A DNA stretch of 64,000 nucleotides from Klebsormidium nitens. Its lineage: Eukaryota > Plantae > Klebsormidiophyceae. Under the pieces are notes generated by a model. It did not search any database. It was not told the DNA's origin and saw only the letters and a program-made list of their open reading frames with translations. Position numbers and translations under genes: made by a program. The stretch lies in contig DF236967.1 of the NCBI GenBank assembly GCA_000708835.1, positions 186,001 to 250,000 of the forward strand. The letters run 5' to 3'. This document shows, one piece after another, positions 12,091-24,652 of this stretch; the first letter of the stretch is position 1; the number at the start of each line of letters is the position of its first letter.

Positions 12091-15000
12091 ATGGACAGGC
12101 CGTCTCGTGCTCGTGCCAAGGGGCCTGACAAACGGGCCTCAGTCGGCGCAGCACTCAACCGTCCTAGTTCACTTCTTCCTGTTTCCTCCGCGCCTAGTCT
12201 GGAGCAAGAGGGAGCCTTGGGGCGCGAGCGGCACATCGGGCCGCCTCGCACGCTGAACGTCTGGGACTTTGCGTCGGAGCGAGCGGCTGAGATCAGCAGC
12301 CTAAACGAGGTTCTCAAGAGTCAGGGGGGAAAGGGCCTGTTCACACTGGCTAGGCATCTACGGCGGAGGACTACCAGTCACAGCAGGCGGCAGTTCCTGT
12401 TCCGGCCCAAGAAACAGAAGGTGGAGTCGGAAAAGGAACTAGAGCAGGGAGATGGGGGGGAAAGAAAGCCTCAGTCCAGGAAGGTGCGGCGGAGGGCAAT
12501 GCTGCAAGCAATCAAGCGAGGGGAGGCCAATGTGGTAAGGCAGCCAAACTTCTTAAGTTAAAACGACTTCGAACCGCCCCAACTTGTTGTACGGTAAAGA
12601 AAGTATGTTGCTTTCAGGTTGCGGTGCTTTAACGATCCTGTGCTTCTCTTTTGCTTTGGATGATATTTATAAATCCTGGAAAGGAGGGCAGCGGAGGCAG
12701 CGCTTGTCAGGAGCTTGTCTTGCAAACACTCTTCCGATCTGCAATCGTAAGGATCCGAGGCATTCAAATGGAGATGCCATCCTCAGTCGCCCAAAATTGC
12801 AACCACAAACCTATAGATGCGGAAAAAATGGGGTACCGTCTGAGCATACCAGCCTCATCAGCTGGAGAACCGGGACTGCTATACGCGATCGGCAGCAACA
12901 CCTTGAAAAGGTCAAACGTGCTACACCCGCGAATTGAACCACGACCATTTGGTCCAAGTGTGACTTGTCACTGCCGGCCAAAGCAGCCGCTCTAACCACT
13001 TGAGCTGTTCCAAGGGATAGGTTTACAGATGCGACTGTGCTACTCAACAACCTTCATATGACTGCCAAAAGGCTCATATTTCTCAATAATATTTCTCCCG
13101 TTTTCAGGGCCCTGACGGAGACATCCGCCTGGAGACTCACGTGTGGCACGCCAAGCGCTTTGTCATGGAGCATCTCTGGGGCCACGTTTTGGCCGCCGGC
13201 CTCCCAGGACGAGGGCGTGGCTCGCGCTCTGTCCTCCGGGCAGCACGCTTTGCCGCTCTAGTTCACGACGCCACTTACGTGCAGCCGATTCAACTAGAAG
13301 GCCCCCGAACGGCTGTCTTTGAGGTCCTGGAGTCGGTGTCCTCTTTTCGGCGAGCAGATGCGGAAAACGGGTCAGCTAAACCGGGGAATGAACCAAGGAG
13401 AGCGGGAGAAGAGGGGGGGGTGTTGGGGAGTGTAGCGTTCGAGGTAATGTTACACAAGCAGGGGGATTTTCCACTGGGCGCAATTGCGCCTGCGACTTTG
13501 ATGTGGCGGCCCCAGAGGGGCCAGTGTTCCGGACCCGTAGCAAACGAGGCGGACATGGAGGAAGACGGGGCGGGAGATGGGGGGCTCCGTGATGGTGACG
13601 TCAGCATGGCTGCAGCGCCACATGAGGAAGCGCTGGGCGACTACATCCCTCTGGAGGGATCGACTCCGACGGCCGAGGCGGGGCAGGCGGTTCCGTCTCG
13701 GACTCAGGACATGTCTTCGGAACAGAGGATCGCAGGCCTAGACTCTGGGCTGGTTGTTGGTAGGGATCGAAGCGGGAAGAGAGAGAACGATCCGATGGAG
13801 GAAGATGAGCGGGAAGGCTTTGGGGGCGCCGCTCGTGCTGACGAGGGTGGGAACGGGGAAGCCGCGGCGCAGTGTCTGGTGTGGGTGCACGCGGCGGCCT
13901 TTGACGAAGCGCTGGGTGTCCTTCAAGGGGCGTGTGCAGGGATGGTGAGCCTTTCAGTATTGGTTCTTGTCCATCCTGCTGAGTTCCACACGTGCTGATT
14001 GTGCATGCGGGTGGCTTTTACTGAGGCATTGGAGCGACTCCGGTATGGCAATTGCTCCGTTCATGAAACAGTCTCTGGACTCACGGATGGCGGTCTGTAA
14101 TGTTCGGAGGCTGAATGAAACTCCAATTCTTCTTCCAGGGTGAGGGGAGCGCCCCCGGGTTTCCAAGGGTGAGGTGCCGGTCCAGGAAAGGCGAGTTCGT
14201 GCGATTGGACGTCATGGGTGCCGAGACCCGTACCGTCCTCTCGAAGGTCCTTCGGCCAATCCGGTGAGTAACGTCGAAAGTCGAAGAGCTTGGGTCTTCA
14301 CTCCGCATCGTGAGCGGATGACGTTCAGGCTTTCTGAGCATCCTTTGTATCTGGAGCCGATGTGACCTCACTAGACCCAAGCTCGCAAGGATTGGTCACA
14401 GATGTTGCGACTGCCGGGTCCTGTTTGTCGGAATGAGCGCATGCAGCCCGGAGCTTCCACTCGAATCTTCGCCGACGAATCTTCTCACGAATGATGCAGG
14501 AGCGGAACATCGTCCCCGGGCGCTGATGTGTTTGAATCAGACGGTGCCACGTGGCAGCGGCTGGTCAGTCCAGCCACTCTTGCTCGTTTTCCTCCTCGAG
14601 CAGTCCTCTCGCTGACGGTCGAGGACCCCAGGCACCAACACGAGGACGTCAGCACGTTCGCGCAACCGGAGCTTGTTCCCTCCCTTACGGAAATTGGGCC
14701 AGATGCAGATTTGCCCCCAGGCTTCGCTAGCCCGCTCTTTTCTCCTACGCAGCCCACACCGAATATGCGCAAGTCTCCTTCCGATCATCTGTTACAGTCC
14801 CCAAGACCCACACCACCCCTTTTCCAATCAACGGACGTTAGACCCCCCTCCATTGATCCTAGGGAGAAAGAATTGGCCCCCTATGCAGCGGCAATGGGGG
14901 CCGACTACCCCCTGCTCTGGGACCCCCCCAGAACACCGGACGGTAAGCCTTTGTGGCCCAAACCGGTGAGCAACACCCTTCTAGGTGACCAGCGGAGACA

Positions 15001-16951
15001 GGCAAGATTAGCTAGCTTTGGGCTGCCCCCGGAGTCCCCGGGGCCAGCCAGGGGGCGGGGTAGAGGTCGAGGGGGGGTGTCCGGAGACCGGGGAAAGGGC
15101 GGGGAAGCCGAAAGCAATGGGCGGACTTCTTCGTGCTGTCCAGTGTGGCTCGTCCAACGGCCAGCCGATGCGGAGTTTGCAGCAGGGTGAGCAGGCTATG
15201 ATTCTGACGTGGGTCTTCAGCTAAAGCCATACATCTCGTGTTCGATACTTTCATCAAAGTATAACCAATGATTGCTTTCAGCGTAAATTTTTCAAAGAAA
15301 GAAGAAAGATTCTACATTGTCTAGAAACTGATCCTGTGTGTTTTGAGCTGTTTTGTCATGTCCGCTCTTCGGTGAACAGCGCGACCTTGACCGGTTGCTC
15401 TCCCTTTCCGAGGCCGTTCTTTACGAGAAGCTTACGTCGGGCATTCGTCTTTGGGGCGAAACGGCAGATCCGTCCCATCAGTGGTGATTGACGTGCCGCG
15501 TTGCGTGTATACTTTGAACAAAGGAACGCTACGTAAGTTCGGACTGTTGCAATTAAAGCCTAACCTTTGCCGCGCACACTCTGACTTTTGATTGTCCAGC
15601 CCTAATCCTTCATCCGTCGAGTCACGAGCGGGACCCCGTCCTCTTTTGACCTCTCTATGGTCCGTCATGCATTGAGCGAGGACACTTTTCCGCGTTTTTC
15701 CGCAGGTGGACCCTCATCGTGCCGTCCGGCTGGGCCCTGCCTTTCTGGGTGCCGCTTATCTACGCTGGCGCACACGCGGTGGGACAGCGAGAGCGAAATT
15801 GGGTCGTGACTGAGGTGAGGCTGTTGCAAAGCGCCGATTAATTCTAACAAACCACATCCTTTTGGGCCCACGAACTGATTATTACATGTATCAAAACTTT
15901 CCACTGCATTGTTAGCTAGCAGCAGCATCGATGTCTGCAGAACGTGTCGGTAGCAGTACCTACTTATACTTTGCGGTCAGACACACCACAGGGTTATTCC
16001 AACGCCGTTTGCATTCTCATGAACTCTTGAGTTTTGGATCACTCCTGAATCTGTTGCTGAGCCCACCTCGCCGTGTCTCCTCCTTAAAGTCCGTGTTTAT
16101 CCTGCCAGGCTGGGACTCCCGTCTTTCCGGACGACTACCCGGACTGTCCTGCGTACGCCCGCACATGGCGATTGAGGCACCAAAAGCTCCTCGACGAGTA
16201 CGCCAAAAAGCCTCCCGCCAAGCGGCCCGCCGAGCCGCCTCCGCTGCCGAACTGGGACTCAGTCTGCAGCACCGGGGCAAGGGAACCGCCGTCTGATCAG
16301 TCGATGGGTGGACAAGCGCCCGAAGCGAGTGCGCGAACCTCATACTTCGTGGCACGGGACCGAGCGACACTTGCGACAGCTACAGGGGTGGCACGTGAGA
16401 ATGTCGCGTCCGATAGGGACCGGGGACGGAGAACCAAAGGCGTGAGGCAGGGTTTGAAAGCCGGAAAGCTGACGTGGAAAGCCGTGGGAAGTGTGCCTGA
16501 GATTGGGGCTCTGCCCAGGGAGCCTGCTGGGGGGGCTTGCTGCCTGGTCGAAGCGCTGCTTAAGATGCCCCGGAAGGGAGTCCCCGAGGAGGGAGCCGAG
16601 ATCCTGGTTCCGACACAGGACGACTTCGACGCGTGGTGCAAATCGCGGACGTGGCAGGGGGTAGAACTCCCGCGAGAACGGGGGAGGGGACGAGGAAACG
16701 AGCTTGCTCAAGCGGGGCCTAACCAAAGTAGGCCGGTAATGGGTTATGTAATTTCGCCGAGTCCCCCCTCAGGCAGCGCACAGAGCCGGGCGTTTGTAGT
16801 GTGTCAGGCGTCCACCTTTCAACGCTTAAGGGCGAGGCAATACTCTGAGAGAGCGGCTGGTGGGGACGCACATGTGTTTGTGCTGGTACATAATTGCGGC
16901 TCGAACATGGGGAGGCCGGGGCTGCTGAGCTTAAAGCTGGACCAGGAATGA
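12091..16951 (+). CDS. POP1: POP1 protein subunit of RNase P/MRP (6 exons: 12091-12534, 13108-13944, ~14140-14266, 14500-~15186, ~15706-15811, ~16108-16951)
   Basis: N-terminal LNVWDFASERAAEISSL...LRRRTTSH; POP1 motif RLETHVWHAKRFVMEHLWG...GRGRGSRS...LVHDATY; POPLD motif GWTLIVPSGWALPFWVPLIYAGAHAVGQRE...FPDDYPDCPAY; canonical splice sites. Confidence 0.92.
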
Positions 16952-17902
16952 ATGTACGACAGACTGACGACCTGCAACCGTCCATATGATTGTCGGCCTC
17001 GACTGTCTCTGTAGATTAAGCTCTAGCTCAGGCTGTGCCAGGCGAAGTTGCCTAGCCACCGAGGCGGCGCGCCAGCTGTTTGACCTCAACTTATTAATCG
17101 TAGTCCATCCTCGCAATCGTACATCCGAAGCGCTATATCTGGTTGCGCGCGCATTCCTGGAGGTACTGCACTGAGTGATCGTTGCGCAAGCATTGCCTGG
17201 AAGATCTAATAATTATACCAATCAAGCAGCTATAGCTCGTTATATGCAAAAGGCACAATGGAACTTAGGTTGCGCACCATGAGCATGTTGGCTACTGGCG
17301 CGTACATATATGCGCCCACTCATGCATGGCTGATTATCGCGATCGGACAATTTGTTGCAATGATATATACAGATGCACCATGACTGCGCGCCTCGCAACC
17401 ATATGGCTGCAACATATTGATATGCTGTTAGACTGCAAATCAGTCAAAGAATTGTTGCTAATCACGCAAGATTCGTTGCTAAGCATGCCATGCGCAAAGT
17501 TCTGCGCACATATGTGAGAATTACGGGGTCTGCGCGACAGTAGGTTTAATGTGCGGATCTGAAAAGTATTGATGATTATGTCACGTACTGGCCCATCGTA
17601 ACATATCCTTAGACAGACCATACGCGACACGTACTTCTGGACGGTATAGCGACCTAGAATTCTGTTTTGAAGGCCGGCAGCCTGGTACGCTTGCGATGTA
17701 AAGCTGGTACTAAAAGCCCACACAGTGGCACAACAGTCAACATCTGGCCGGCTTCTGAGCTGTATATCCCCACTGGCAAGAGATACCCATGGCAAAAGCG
17801 GATACAGTCAACAGAAGTTCCCGCGTTTCGGACCGTATCGTCCATATGTATGTACAGTACAATACTGCTTCAGCAGTGAGCCCTTTCTTAGGGGCTGAAC
17901 AA

Positions 17903-20688
17903 TCAGCTGCCACCTGTCAACTCAGGAACCGGTCCTGGCCGAGCCTTTTGCTTGATGGCTATTCGTGTTGAGATGCCCTTGGTCATCTTGCCTAATAGCA
18001 TGTTTTTGACTGGACTCTTCCCTGTAAGGAGCAATCGCAAAATTACATCAGCACTCGCTTCAATGCACCGTACGGGGCAGTCTTGCAATGATGCATCTCT
18101 TCGAATCAGCTCGCTACTATAAAACCAAGCCACAAACGATCGCATGATGCAAAAGCCAGGTGACCCTGTGAAAATCCTCTTTGCCGTTACCCCTAGCCCG
18201 AATACAGAAAGAACTTATGACCGGATTTGACATCAGAAGAGGCCTGCCTTGGCTTGCGACAAAAGCTGCTGGTGCATCACTCCCTATCCGGGACTTCTTG
18301 CGTGTGTGGGTAAACTTGCGTGTGTGGGTAAAAATGCTTGTCCGTTTCTGCTCAGCTCGTCTCACCTGCCACTTCCAGCAGGGCCGCCTTCTGTTCTCGG
18401 GACAGCTCCCCATCGAAGTGTACAACAACATCAAGGCCGTCGGGGAGCTGCCCTTCTGCAAAACAACCCGTGAGAGAGCGGTCAGCCTGATAAAGGCATA
18501 TTATCACATAAGGCGAGCCACATGGTGCGAGGTCCAAGAGATAATGATAACGCCCTACGATGATTGGAAAGTTGCTGCAAGCTCGACATTGATACACTGG
18601 TGATTTTAAAGAATTTCGAAGGCATCAGTTTCTTGGTGAGATGTGTAGTTTTTGTGGAACTTTCCGAGTGATTAACGTGCGCGTGATCATTGTAACGACG
18701 CGTTCGGCCAGCAAGTCATTCTGCGCTTCCTGTCTCAAACGTCCAAACACGGCTTTCCTTCCAAACAACTAGTAAAATCGCAAGAAGGGCTTCGCAGTTC
18801 TGTACTTCAAGACCCCAGCTACAAAGCAGTTGCTATTCAAGAAATGTTCGGACAGAGGCACAATAGTTCTTAAGAAACCCGTTTGAATAGGGGGTCGACA
18901 CTCACTTCCTCGCCCATGTTCTTTCACCACCACACGTATCCGTCGCAGCGGCCAATTCTTCCTGTCAGCATACTGCAGGCAGTCATAAAGAAGAGATCAA
19001 GTAAACATCCAAATCTTTCACATACCGTCCACTCCAAGAATCCCGAAAGAGAGTCGGTCATAAAGGATTGCCAGCAGGTCCAGCAGCTGATTGCCGGTCT
19101 TTCTCGCGAAAGAGTAGGAGCCAGGCAGATTGGGACTTGTGTTTGGACCCTGTTTCAGTAAGGGAAGCCCCGTGTCTGGCTCATCCCCTGCCAACCCAAG
19201 GCATCCGAGACAAGACAAGGTGCAATTCTTAGGACCCATGGAGGGGCCTCACGAATCCTCACACAGCCTCGCATCTTTTCACATTTTGGGCATCGCCCAT
19301 ATGACAGTCGTTGTTGCATAAGAGTAGCATTTGAATTCTACGTAAAAGAAATAGAAGCTTCCTTCAAAGTGTTTACAAAGTTCGAGAACGCTCACCATTC
19401 GCATTGTAAGGGATGTCTCCATTGCAAGACCTGACAGCACCATCTCCTTGGGTCTGCACAAGCAAGAACTCCGTGATTACAGCAGTATATTACTTTACTC
19501 CTGATTTCCAGAGCTTGTCACCACAACAGCACCATCTCGATGGGTCTGCTCAGGCGAAAATACCTCAATCGGAGCGGTATCTTCCATCTCTGCTCCTAAT
19601 GTTCGACTCCTTTTACACCACCTATTCCATGAAGCTGAAGGACTAATGATGAAATCCCTGAAGCTGCCTAACGTCGACTGCAATTCCCACTTGACCAGCA
19701 AAGAGGAGAGAACGCTTTTCAATCTTTGGAAAGCCCCAATTGCTTTCTTCAAGACTGTAAAGCCCGCATACTTACGAAGGGCCAAAATCTGTACCACCAT
19801 ATTCCAATCCGAGATCCCCCTGGATGATGTGGCTTTTGCTTCGGATCAGATGGCGGTATCGAACATTATCCTGAAAAGACATAGCAGAACAAGTTGAGGC
19901 AAGCCGGGTGGACAATGGAGTGGTGAAGCATCCTTGGACAGAACTTCAGCGTGGCTCTGATGAGGCCCGGAGATGCACTTTCAAATGATGCTTTCAAGAA
20001 AAAGAACGTCCTGTATGATGAATGACAACCAGCCGACTCAACAACGATTGAGCACCTAGGTTGAGAGATCATGCCAATGCACAAGGGCAATTTTCACCAA
20101 AGTCTGTGAGATGCTTTAACTTTGACGGCGCAACTCGCAGAGTGCCAACTTTAGGGAGGCTCATTCACCAACATCATCGTATTTCATAAGTCCGACAGCG
20201 TTTCATACACACGGCCAACAATATGTGACCCATCCGAAGATGCTATTACTCTTATTGATTCTGAAACCTGTATTCTTGTAAGGCACATTTCTTACCGTCG
20301 TCTCCTCTGCAACCACTTGCGCCAGATGCTGCTCTGGAACCGTTTTTGGAGTAGACGAAGCTCGGCATCGAACACCGGGCGGTCCAACTGGATTCACTGG
20401 GCTCACTGGGCTCCTTCTAAGGTCTTCAATTTTCCCTTGACTAAGAAAGATGTCATTATTTGGTCGGAATGTGCTTCCTCTTGAAGTGAGACTATTATCC
20501 CTACTGCATATTAGAGTGTTGCAGATGCTTCTGGACAACGAAGGTGGAGGCAATGGACGCTTCTGAAATGCTGGGAACCGCCTGTTCTGACCACTCAAGC
20601 ATTCCTGCTCCTTTGAACCGTGCCGCAGAGTTTGCGGCCTGAAAGACTCCGACGACGCCCGATGCAGAGATTGGGAAGAGCTCATCAT
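17903..20688 (-). CDS. OsmC/YhfA-like (PF02566-fold) protein with a probable plastid transit peptide and no catalytic cysteines; 273 aa, 6 exons: 20688-20296, 19870-19776, 19453-19396, 18972-18906, 18455-18366, 18021-17903
   Basis: All five introns are GT-AG and phase-compatible (393+95+58+67+90+119 = 822 nt). Mature part: QVVAEETTDNVRYRHLIRSKSHIIQGDLGLEYGGTDFGPSPKEMVLSGLAMETSLTMRMYADRKNWPLRRIRVVVKEHGRGKGQLPDGLDVVVHFDGELSREQKAALLEVAGKSPVKNMLLGKMTKGISTRI. It aligns with the bacterial OsmC-like consensus (GGxDxGPSPYxLLLAALGACTSMTLRMYAxRKGWPL ... GDLxxEQRxRLLEIAxKCPV). The start codon is less certain than the domain. Confidence 0.82.
18297..18332. repeat. perfect 18-bp tandem duplication (CTTGCGTGTGTGGGTAAA x2) in intron 5 of the OsmC-like gene
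   Basis: Read directly: 18297-18314 and 18315-18332. Confidence 0.9.
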
Positions 20689-21223
20689 CTTCCAGGTCAA
20701 GTGGAGCACAAGCAACCGCAAACCTTAAGCAGCCCCCTCCTCTGAACAGCGCTCAGCAACGGAGGACTTTCAATCCAAATACTGTGCTCTTTTGTCGTCG
20801 TAATCAGCTCCTGCCACTGCCAAAGCCACTTTGCCAGCCCCCTTCAGAAAGCAATGCGGACGCACATGCTTGGTCGCATTCCTATAGCACTGTAGCAGGT
20901 CGTTCACTTGCCCCCACCACAGTCCACTGCTTCCTTCTGAGACGCTCACTTCTGACGTCGACGACGAGACCTCAGAAGTCCGACTCAGGACTCGTGAGAG
21001 GCGGACTAGACTGCTCAGGCTCGAGTCTGACAAGGCCCAGGCCCACAGGGTCAGCGAAGTCCTGCGTGCTCTCTTCTCAAAATCGCCACCAACCATGCGC
21101 AAGTTCTTGCACAACGCTCCTGAAGGTAGTGGAGGGATCAGCGAGGCGTGGTTCTGATGTTTTTGAAGAGTCAGCGCCTAGGATCCTCTTCTGCAGTGGC
21201 AGTGCGCCGTGTGGAGCAACATC

Positions 21224-24200
21224 ATGTTCTACGACAATCGTGTGGTAAGTTTCTAGGATACTTGAGCTGCGAGTTGTGAAAATTTACGTCGTGTTGAGCC
21301 TTTCATTGTTCTTGCTCCCTGGCGTGTTGAAAGTTGAATCCAAACTCTGATTATGTTGCGAGCTCCAACAAGGCAGAACGCCTGCGTGTCCGCTCTCAGC
21401 ATTGAGCATCACTTCTCTATCCAAGGAGAAAATCGTGCCTCAGCAAGAGTTGGTATGAGAGTTCATAAGGTTTCTGGTCAATCGCTTCCAAGAGGTTCTA
21501 AACAGTGCCACCCGCTCAAGGTGCCAGGAAAGCTTGCTGACTTTTTCACTTGCCTCCTGCTCGCTAGAACCTCAAGGAGAGCCGAGACTACTCGTTTCTG
21601 ACTACATCCAAGGCGTCAAAAGCTGACAGGGAAGATGGGGCCTCAGAGGACAGGAATGGTGGTGCTGGTCGCAGCAGTCAGAGTAGGGGTGCAACCACAG
21701 GAGGGTGAGCGCTTGACGCCCGCTTGTGTTTATCCCAGACCTGATGCGCAAGACCATGCGCTTTATTCGCTTGGTTCGCGAATCCTTACAATAAAGGGCT
21801 CAAACAGCGGCCATGACTTGCGTGACATCAAATGCATCAGGATGTGAATGATCGTTATGAAACACCAAATTGCTTGCAGGTCTGACACAGACACATGCTA
21901 TTCTTTGCAGCTGGGGTGGGTTTTTTGGTTCGAAGCCAGAGAAGAGCGCTGCAGAAAGGCTGGCGGAGTTGCAGAAGATGCGGGAACAAGCTGAACAGGA
22001 GAAAGCTCGGAGAGAGTTGGAAAGGATAAGGGTATGTGGAAGGAGAAGCACCTGGAATCTCCTGGTTGCGTACGCGCCGTAGGTCCAGTTGCATATGTTT
22101 GCACGACTTATTTACAGAACTTGGTCTGATATGTTGCCTTTGGCTAAGGTGTTATGCTTCAACCGAGCTCAGGTTTCTACTACGCCGCAGATCGTTTTTG
22201 AGTCAGAATTACTGCGGGCTGGCTCCTCCTCAGCAGAAGTCAAATCCACTCTAGTCATGTTTGCGCAGAGGGTCAAGGGCCTTTTGGTCCCTCCTGACTA
22301 CTCTCTACCAACTGAGTACACATAAACCGTTGTATGTGTGGCAGGCCGACCGGATTGCAGCATCCAAGAAGGCCTCTGTTAGCGCCGCCTCCTCGGGGAC
22401 TTCCCAGCGGTCGGGTGGTTCTAGCGCAGGCTCCAAGAAAAGCGATGCGATGCAGAAGATCCAGGAGCTGGAGGTAAGCGAAAACTTACAACAAACAGCA
22501 GGTTCAGCTGGTCACAATCCATAGTGGTGCACAGCTACAGACTAGATGTTTACGCCAGGCCTTTCCACACGCATTCGTCGGGATATTTGGCTGTGCATGT
22601 GGAGATGCCGTCAGAAAAGCTGAAATCACTTGAAAACGAAACGAGCTTGATGCATCGATCTAGAGCTGTCAGGATCACGTTTGTTGATTACAAGCTTTTA
22701 CATGGATTGTTCAATTCTTGAAAGAATCTGGTCGACATCTCAGAGCGTGACTATCCTCCGGTTCTTATGGCAGAAACACACTCGAGCCCAAGCGCTCAAG
22801 CAGGCCCGTGACTTCTCCGACCTCCTTGGGAACGGGGAGCCTGCAAAGCCGCGTGCTTCTGATCCGGGAGGGGCGTTTGCTAGTGCAAAAAGGTCGTTGG
22901 AAACGTTGAAGCAAAAGGTCGACGACTATTCCGAGTCCATTCGGCGAAGAAATCCTGAGACCGTTTCAAAAGCCCCAAAGGTCGCTGTCCAGCCCCCCAA
23001 AGCTCCGGTCACTCCAAAACATAGCGTATACAAAGACGGGAGGCAGAAAGGGGACCAGAGAGCACCAAGAGAGGCTGACCGTAAGCCCGGTTACAAGGAG
23101 CCCCCGTCGAAGGGGGGCCTGGCCATATCCAGCCTCGCTACGATCACACCGGAAGGTGCGCTGGTTGCGAATTCGGGCATTTCGTTGGAGGATGCCAAGC
23201 GGCTGAAGCAAGGGGCGAAGCTGCTTGGTATGAAGCTGTACTTCGAGAAAGAGGACAAGCAGCGGTTGAAGGAGGAGAAAGCGGCACAGGAACGGAGGGC
23301 GGCGGGGAAAGGCGGGGCTGCTTCCGGGCGGCCAGCAAACGGGAGCGGTTTGGGTGCAAAGAGCGAGGGCAGTGCAAACGGGGGGATGCCGAGGAGCTTG
23401 GACGAGGAGCGGCGAAGGGGGGGGGGTTTGTCCGGACTCAGCACCGCAGCGCCACGGAAGTCAGAAGGGGGACTAGCGCAGAGTGGACGGCCTGGGGTTG
23501 GGGGACATGCGCGCGAGAAAGCTGGGGGCAACGCGCACAGGAACGGGAGCAGCGGGCACGATCGGGCCCCTGGGGGGGGCGGGAGGAGGGAGGCGTTTCC
23601 GCCGTTTAGAGGGCCGGTGAAGAGGAAGCGTCCGGAGGAGGAAATGGAGGATGCGGACAGTTTCTTGGACGAGGGCGAGGAGGAGGACGAGGAGGGGCCG
23701 TCTCAGGAGGCGGTCTCGTCCATGATCCGGAAGATGTTCAGGTAGGGCGGCCGGCTGCAGCAAAGCTCGCTGCGGATATTTTGAAGAACTGTATGCATTT
23801 GTCGACTTTGGCACATTCTGGGGAAAGAAGGCGGCCAGAGAAACTTTCCCAACGCTCGAGGATGTGTATTCAGTGAAATTTGGCACGACTTTATCTGCGG
23901 TACTCCCTGAAATCAGGTTGAAAGAGGAGCATGCTGTTGAGACCGTGGCTCGCGGTTGACTTTGGGCCTTGTGTTGGAACAGACTGTCTCGTAAGGACGA
24001 CTGTCCATGAGAGATCGAAGCACTGTCGACTGATTTGCAAGTTGAATTGTCACCTATGCTAGTGTTCTGCTGGTCCAAATTCCATCCCAACATCTTGGTT
24101 TCTGGTGGTGGCTGTCTTCCAATCACTGGTGTCAACTCCGCTGCACAGGTATAATCCTCACAAGTACGTCGCGGATGATCGCGACGATCCCATGATGGAG

Positions 24201-24652
24201 GTGGGCTTCAAGCGGATGCAGGCGGAGGAAGCGCGCAGGTAAGCCGCCTTTCAAAGGATGTACTAGATGTGAAAATGGACTGTATGGTCCCGTTGGTTAT
24301 CTGCCTGAGTACACCTTCCAAAGTCTCAAGCATAGGTTCCAACATTGTTCATGGGTTTGACAGGGGACTTTGTCGAATGCCCACGATGGATGAGTTGCTG
24401 AGTGGGTCATGTCGCATAAGGCCATGTAGGGCCTGAAAGGCCTACACCGTCCCTTTTCCTCTTACCAGATGACCAGACTAGTTTGGGCCCAATGAGCAAA
24501 CGAGGTGCTCATTCGTTGTCCTCTCTTGCAGTGCACGCATCGCTCGCGAGGAGGACGAGCGGGAGGCAGAGAGGCTTGAACTTGAAGAAAGACGAAGAGA
24601 GGAGAAGAGGAGAAAGAAAACAGCTTCAAAAGGGAAGTTTGTTGACGATTGA
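21224..24652 (+). CDS. SPT2: SPT2 chromatin protein / histone chaperone (exons 21224-21244, 21568-21704, 21911-22031, 22345-22473, 22774-23741, 24149-24238, 24532-24652)
   Basis: C-terminal SPT2 domain DSFLDEGEEEDEE...VSSMIRKMFR|YNPHKY...DDRDDPMMEVGFKRMQAEEARSARIAREEDERE; plant-type WGGFFGS and RD(Y/F)SxL motifs; phase-compatible introns. The first micro-exon (MFYDNRV|gtaagt) is inferred. Confidence 0.88.

Follow-up and report, generated by a model that had tools for sequence, protein, structure and literature searches.

How can a protein of the Ohr/OsmC family, whose hallmark is a pair of cysteines (PMC5384416), be kept by an alga once both cysteines are gone? The question is raised by a gene on the minus strand of a 64,000-nucleotide stretch of Klebsormidium nitens DNA (hereafter the window; assembly GCA_000708835.1, scaffold DF236967.1), where it is flanked by an SPT2-domain gene and POP1. 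Its predicted product has a glutamate (Glu175) and a serine (Ser237) at the positions of the two family cysteines. The comparisons described below indicate that the gene encodes a working protein that gave up thiol chemistry and is not a dead gene, because related Klebsormidium lineages keep it almost unchanged.

Six exons joined across five GT...AG introns, all with acceptors of the polypyrimidine type, give a coding sequence of 822 nt that remains in frame for 273 codons and ends in TGA (Table 1). A word search with the open reading frame of exon 1 retrieved a K. nitens protein (P0001; KFL_000180350, 'hypothetical protein', 273 aa), which was used in the later searches, and a local comparison showed that the spliced model is identical to it residue for residue. 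Splicing and identity together bear out the five introns and the 273-aa frame that an initial annotation of the window had proposed. The same annotation had described the gene as hidden; since the public protein is identical to the spliced model, the gene is real and already annotated, with exactly the same structure. Exon-by-exon Pfam and NCBIfam scans gave no match, because the pieces are just 19–38 aa long.

The complete protein matches the Pfam family PF02566 (OsmC-like) with 33.3 bits (gathering score 27.5), the match covering aa 158–244 and profile positions 2–92 of 100; this is about half the score of a second K. nitens family member, KFL_001370240 (33 vs 63 bits). In an AlphaFold2 model computed from an alignment of 98 sequences, the 10-residue blocks across 121–260 have a mean predicted local distance difference test score (pLDDT) of 85–98. 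Foldseek returned 62 PDB matches at E<=0.001, and the top listed are OsmC/Ohr/YhfA-type entries. The best of these (2pn2, 1vla, 1lql, 6mjn, 2onf and 1ml8, the last being E. coli YhfA) have target-normalised TM-scores of 0.70–0.85, with 2pn2 at 0.85, whereas Ohr (1n2f, 1zb9) and OsmC proper (1nye, 1ukk) score lower, at 0.57–0.65. A profile made from the alignment ranks 9wo1 first (2.7e-46), followed by 2pn2, 3cje, 1vla, 2opl, 2onf and 1ml8, with Ohr/OsmC proper below; among solved structures the nearest in sequence is 9wo1, a chain of 400 aa titled 'Osmotically inducible protein C', through its C-terminal domain. The OsmC fold first suggested for this locus is thus supported both by a PF02566 score above the gathering score and by the structures found with the model. 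Since YhfA-type entries outrank Ohr/OsmC proper in the structure and profile searches, we conclude that the protein, as judged from its sequence and model, is a member of the third, YhfA/'Ohr-like' subfamily of the Ohr/OsmC family.

Members of this third group keep the Cys pair, lack the catalytic Arg and Glu of Ohr/OsmC and are poorly characterised biochemically (PMC5384416, PMC8945050, PMC4069020). The Klebsormidium protein resembles them in fold and in its best sequence and structure matches, and shares the motifs GG-x-D-x-GP-x-P-x-E, T-x-R-M-Y-A-x-R-K-x-W-P-L, E-Q and P-V. It differs from them in having Glu175 and Ser237 in place of the Cys pair described for the subfamily (PMC8945050, PMC5384416), in having Ala229 for Arg, and in its long eukaryotic N-terminal extension and C-terminal tail. 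To Ohr/OsmC proper, the lipoyl-dependent organic hydroperoxide reductases represented by 1n2f, 1zb9, 1nye and 1ukk, the likeness lies in the fold (Foldseek probability 1.00) and in a Glu nine residues before the first-Cys position; both cysteines, the peroxidatic one on the long helix and the resolving one some 60 residues further on in x-C-P-V, are missing and the sequence similarity is remote. Two other comparisons were set aside. An NCBIfam model for an OsmC-related selenoprotein matched only below threshold, and selenocysteine is irrelevant here because codon 175 is GAG; FTN_1133, weighed as a possible earlier case of an OsmC-like protein that is not a peroxidase, has been shown not to be an Ohr/OsmC homologue (PMC4069020).

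Outside Klebsormidium, a word search with the domain gave almost no matches, just bacterial fusions at 34–39% identity. Since the argument rests on the residues of relatives, an exhaustive search of 1.84 billion representatives was therefore run with P0001; it gave 1800 matches at E<=0.001, and the best 150 of the 1800 are considered here. All the proteins retrieved were aligned with phmmer, and the residue columns were read from the resulting 156 domain rows. In the alignment with PDB 9wo1_A, the Cys of GLGACT is matched by Glu175 and that of KCPV by Ser237, and Glu175 also occupies the column of the first Cys of 1vla. The first Cys is present in 153 of the 156 rows, most often together with the second (128 rows), otherwise with Thr (17), a gap (5), Ser (2) or Tyr (1) in the second column; a single row has Gly followed by Cys. 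Glu with Ser occurs in two rows only, those of K. nitens and K. subtile. The glutamate and serine codons are GAG and AGT, located where the initial annotation had placed them, and correspond to codons 175 and 237; GAG differs from TGY at all three bases. Since the first and second Cys are both replaced, neither the sulfenic acid nor the intramolecular disulfide of the Ohr/OsmC cycle can arise in the Klebsormidium protein.

Within the domain, the family's invariant or near-invariant residues D150, G156, G157, G161, P164, L172, T179, Y183, A184, W189, G220, L222, Q226 and P238 are all kept, and Cys175 is the sole residue of this class to have been replaced. Glu166 is retained in P-K-E, nine residues ahead of position 175. 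Relative to residues conserved in the streptophyte clade or in the family, the Klebsormidium changes are G143K, C175E, M178L, L218F, R229A, C237S and L255I. In the Ohr/OsmC subfamilies the position of the catalytic Arg varies, and it has been reported absent in Ohr-like/YhfA proteins (PMC5384416, PMC8945050); the Arg229 that sequence comparison shows to be conserved in the subfamily is Ala in the Klebsormidium protein. Most relatives are without the C-terminal tail past residue 257, and about half of the family also stops before 259.

Conservation within the genus carries the argument that the gene is functional. A K. subtile Trinity transcript (P0002, from EukProt) encodes a domain that is 100% identical and collinear over all five junctions, with an N-terminal region about 68% identical. 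It provides RNA-level support for the junctions, from a sister species, and shows that the gene is transcribed at least in K. subtile. A third lineage is represented by P0003, which led to a 10.1-kb Logan contig (L001; SRR23617307) that is collinear with window positions 14884–24622 at 70–88% nucleotide identity, neighbour genes included. In L001 the six exons and all ten splice dinucleotides are kept, whereas intron lengths vary and intron identity is only 42–66%. Exons 2–6 show 42 synonymous base differences and just a single replaced codon, P263A, which is also the only difference in the C-terminal tail. The Nei-Gojobori method gives a rate of synonymous change (dS) of 0.54 and of non-synonymous change (dN) of 0.009 for these exons (dN/dS 0.0175), compared with a dN/dS of 0.79 for exon 1. 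Codons 175 and 237 are likewise GAG and AGT in L001. The domain is under very strong purifying selection, in agreement with the earlier view that the intact frame speaks against decay. A sequencing error had also been judged unlikely on account of the base changes needed; that judgement is strengthened by the recurrence of GAG and AGT in an independent assembly and of the same residues in the K. subtile transcript. Because of this conservation in L001 and K. subtile, decay, sequencing error and mis-splicing are excluded for practical purposes, and RNA editing is ruled out on the same grounds.

Table 1. Exons and the two substituted cysteine codons of the K. nitens OsmC-fold gene (window coordinates)
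Feature	Position	Strand	Residues	Content
Exon 1	20296..20688	-	1-131	ATG at 20688-20686; ends in conserved V-R-C-R-A-S-S...AEETT
Exon 2	19776..19870	-	132-163	N-terminal beta strands and GGTDFGP motif of OsmC-like domain
Exon 3	19396..19453	-	163-182	Start of long helix, with P-K-E166 and Glu175
Codon 175	19417..19419	-	175	GAG (Glu); first (peroxidatic-position) Cys site
Exon 4	18906..18972	-	183-205	YADRKNWPL motif and beta strand
Exon 5	18366..18455	-	205-235	Beta strand and helix GELSREQKAALLEVA; family Arg at 229 replaced by Ala
Exon 6	17903..18021	-	235-273	K-S237-P-V for K-C-P-V, last strand, C-terminal tail; TGA at 17905-17903
Codon 237	18014..18016	-	237	AGT (Ser); second (resolving-position) Cys site

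Where did such a protein come from? Among the best 150 of the 1800 matches, the closest tier (87–134 bits) is Cys/Cys throughout and comprises K. nitens KFL_001370240, Marchantia polymorpha, Riccia fluitans, Physcomitrium patens, Closterium, Mesostigma viride and a few further assemblies. The initial annotation had asked whether orthologues in other algae and bryophytes have the Glu and Ser substitutions; these named relatives do not share them. KFL_001370240 (P0008, 156 aa) is encoded on another scaffold, keeps both cysteines and has 51% identity to the Glu/Ser protein in the matched domain stretch. In a maximum-likelihood tree of 60 domain sequences, a streptophyte clade was recovered (support 96/80), nested in a larger one (100/91). 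The three Cys-less sequences group together (100/100); their stem measures 0.79 changes per column and their internal branch length is zero. The end branch of the canonical K. nitens paralogue is 0.28. An approximately unbiased (AU) test of a Klebsormidium-only duplication gave p 0.48, and the branching order inside the streptophyte clade is not resolved. Members of this clade, including the Marchantia 'OsmC family protein', are nearest to the window protein in the tree and share with it the signatures P-S/E-P-K-E/D and C-P-V-K-x-M; several also have V/I-R-C upstream of the domain. Unlike these Cys/Cys proteins, the window protein is set apart on a long stem of its own and was found in Klebsormidium only. 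Among the matches listed, the sequences identify the Glu/Ser protein as a Klebsormidium-restricted paralogue that exists beside a canonical two-Cys copy. Klebsormidium flaccidum had earlier been listed among the eukaryotes with Ohr/OsmC homologues (Meireles et al. 2017, PMC5384416), and a literature search found no paper on a Cys-less family member or on KFL_000180350.

Two observations concern the streptophyte proteins themselves. The annotated model of P0008 begins M-S-S-V-R-C, at the motif that other streptophyte homologues have just after the presequence, and may therefore be missing a 5' exon for a targeting peptide. The Mesostigma viride protein (P0012, 217 aa) has a C-terminal WW domain (PF00397, 30.7 bits vs a 26.9-bit cut-off) and is either a true OsmC-WW fusion or a merged gene model.

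The part of the protein ahead of the domain behaves differently. Its first 108 residues include 19 Ser, 13 Arg, 12 Pro and 7 acidic residues and evolve nearly neutrally save for the last ~25. In the AlphaFold2 model, blocks 1–110 have a pLDDT of 38–59, and the N-terminal ~115 residues are of low confidence and mostly without secondary structure. Cys108 sits in a V/I-R-C motif (V-R-C/R-A) that is common to the Klebsormidium copies, Riccia, Marchantia and other homologues. The sequence V-R-C/R-A resembles stromal processing sites, at which transit peptides are cleaved. Composition and model suggest that the N-terminal extension of ~110–130 aa is probably an organelle presequence; plastid targeting is plausible from the sequence, with a mitochondrial location as the alternative. 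The mature domain had been described as having no Cys at all. This holds for residues 109–273, but Cys108 lies just upstream, so the description hinges on the predicted cleavage site.

We propose the following explanation. A real nuclear gene encodes a precursor in which an N-terminal extension precedes an OsmC-fold domain of the YhfA/'Ohr-like' subfamily. The gene originated as a paralogue inside the streptophyte two-Cys clade, the canonical KFL_001370240 still being present in K. nitens. Along the stem branch the protein changed fast; Glu175 and Ser237 took the places of the two family cysteines, Ala229 that of the conserved Arg, and the sequence has since been almost frozen. The fold and many other family-conserved residues would have been kept for a putative non-thiol role, most likely as a sensor, a carrier or a regulator that binds the ligand or partner of the ancestral pocket (a hydrophobic hydroperoxide, a lipid or a lipoyl arm). 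Taken with its variants, the proposal that the fold and the ancestral pocket or surface are kept and that the protein acts without thiol chemistry, by binding a ligand or partner, is the one we favour, with reasonable though not strong confidence. The strictly kept carboxylate of Glu175 is probably part of the new function and not a neutral filler. A bolder idea, which we put forward as a long shot, is that Glu175 is a charge mimic of an oxidised (sulfinate-like) first Cys, making the protein a permanently 'oxidised-looking' OsmC-fold decoy or sensor in an organelle. If so, the family's normal partners, for example lipoylated proteins or a lipid hydroperoxide, would be bound but not turned over, and a redox-independent regulator would have arisen from a thiol peroxidase-like scaffold.

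Paralogues with altered catalysis are common across enzyme families. The Klebsormidium protein shares with pseudoenzymes in general the loss of the nucleophile in one paralogue, a fast stem followed by strong constraint, and the retention of a canonical copy. It differs from them in that the charged Glu may signal new chemistry over plain inactivation, and a partner or regulatory role is so far only a proposal made here. The term 'pseudo-peroxidase', used in the initial annotation, assumes too much: it presumes an ancestral peroxidase activity, which in the YhfA/Ohr-like subfamily is itself poorly established (PMC5384416, PMC8945050). Three points weigh against the explanation proposed above. 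The unsettled ancestral activity of the subfamily makes it uncertain which function was lost (PMC5384416, PMC8945050); the conserved Cys108 could, to judge from the sequence, stay in the mature protein; and a look-up of K. nitens transcript contigs with the exact protein returned the genome record only.

The first alternative is that the protein has become a new, non-redox enzyme, in which the carboxylate of Glu175 would serve catalysis as general base, nucleophile or metal ligand in a reaction such as hydrolysis or isomerisation of a lipid-derived substrate. We consider this unlikely. The change from Cys to Glu takes three base changes and the codon is the same in two lineages despite a dS of 0.54, and a charged residue held on a long helix under a dN/dS of 0.018 suggests a role; in addition, alpha/beta-hydrolase fusions in many close bacterial relatives hint at lipid or ester substrates for the subfamily. 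However, literature searches turned up no precedent for such an enzyme, and the conserved Arg229 was lost, not gained.

OsmC-fold proteins have been reported to work as homodimers (PMC8945050), and the Glu/Ser protein might instead be a regulatory or decoy subunit that pairs with KFL_001370240, or that mimics its oxidised state through a sulfinate-like Glu and so occupies its reductant or partner. The genome does encode a canonical paralogue, with about half of the residues identical in the matched domain stretch, and many family residues beyond the Cys pair and Arg229 are retained. Against this, the annotated model of the paralogue starts at the V-R-C motif without a presequence, leaving a shared compartment uncertain, and the long stem makes drift of the interface possible. 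We regard a subunit of this kind as decidedly improbable.

It is very improbable that thiol peroxidase activity persists in the protein by way of Cys108 or an external thiol. The V/I-R-C motif is conserved in several streptophyte homologues, and there are bacterial variants that lack only the second Cys (17 Cys/Thr, 2 Cys/Ser and 1 Cys/Tyr). Yet these single-Cys variants keep the first Cys, the one that is absent here, and the model places Cys108 in a segment of low confidence that is probably disordered. The motif around Cys108 is, moreover, of the kind typically seen where transit peptides are cleaved. Cys108 is not a replacement for the lost cysteines, because the same motif is present in homologues that keep both canonical ones. 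We give next to no credence to a pseudogene, mis-splicing or a sequencing artefact: the halved Pfam score and the lack of a retrieved K. nitens transcript fit such an origin, but they are outweighed by a dN/dS of 0.018 at a dS of 0.54, ten splice dinucleotides kept while the introns diverge, an identical domain in the K. subtile transcript, and the same GAG and AGT in an independent assembly.

Several further features of other relatives and of the locus were recorded. A bacterial relative from a metagenome (P0044, 135 aa) has Gly at the first Cys position and keeps the second, and the 17 relatives with Thr at the second Cys read R-T-P-V-T; natural one-Cys forms of the subfamily therefore exist. 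Two separate OsmC-like domain matches are found in P0023 (586 aa), and two with differing sequences in P0013 (313 aa), which points to tandem domains in the latter. About one quarter of the close bacterial relatives are 340–440 aa long, like PDB 9wo1, and the three long ones with listed Pfam domains have an alpha/beta-hydrolase N-terminal to the OsmC domain. Intron 5 of the K. nitens gene contains a short tandem duplication on the minus strand (18298–18333), consisting of two copies of the 18-nt unit TTTACCCACACACGCAAG. The upstream neighbour lies in divergent orientation (22681–23745, plus strand, and L002:1–965) and encodes an SPT2-domain chromatin protein (PF08243); the single open reading frame scores 18.6 bits, under the cut-off, the annotated 528-aa product has PF08243, and the gene is kept in L001.

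What is new here is a lineage-restricted, selectively maintained Cys-less paralogue in the YhfA/Ohr-like branch, encoded by a gene that was itself already annotated. The scope is narrow, one genus with no known phenotype, and we see the finding as a modest, well-supported curiosity. A natural member that lacks both cysteines, under very strong purifying selection beside a canonical paralogue, nevertheless shows that thiol chemistry is not needed for the fold to serve a function. The presence of the two paralogues in one culturable, early-branching land-plant relative offers a natural contrast for asking what the YhfA/Ohr-like subfamily binds and does.

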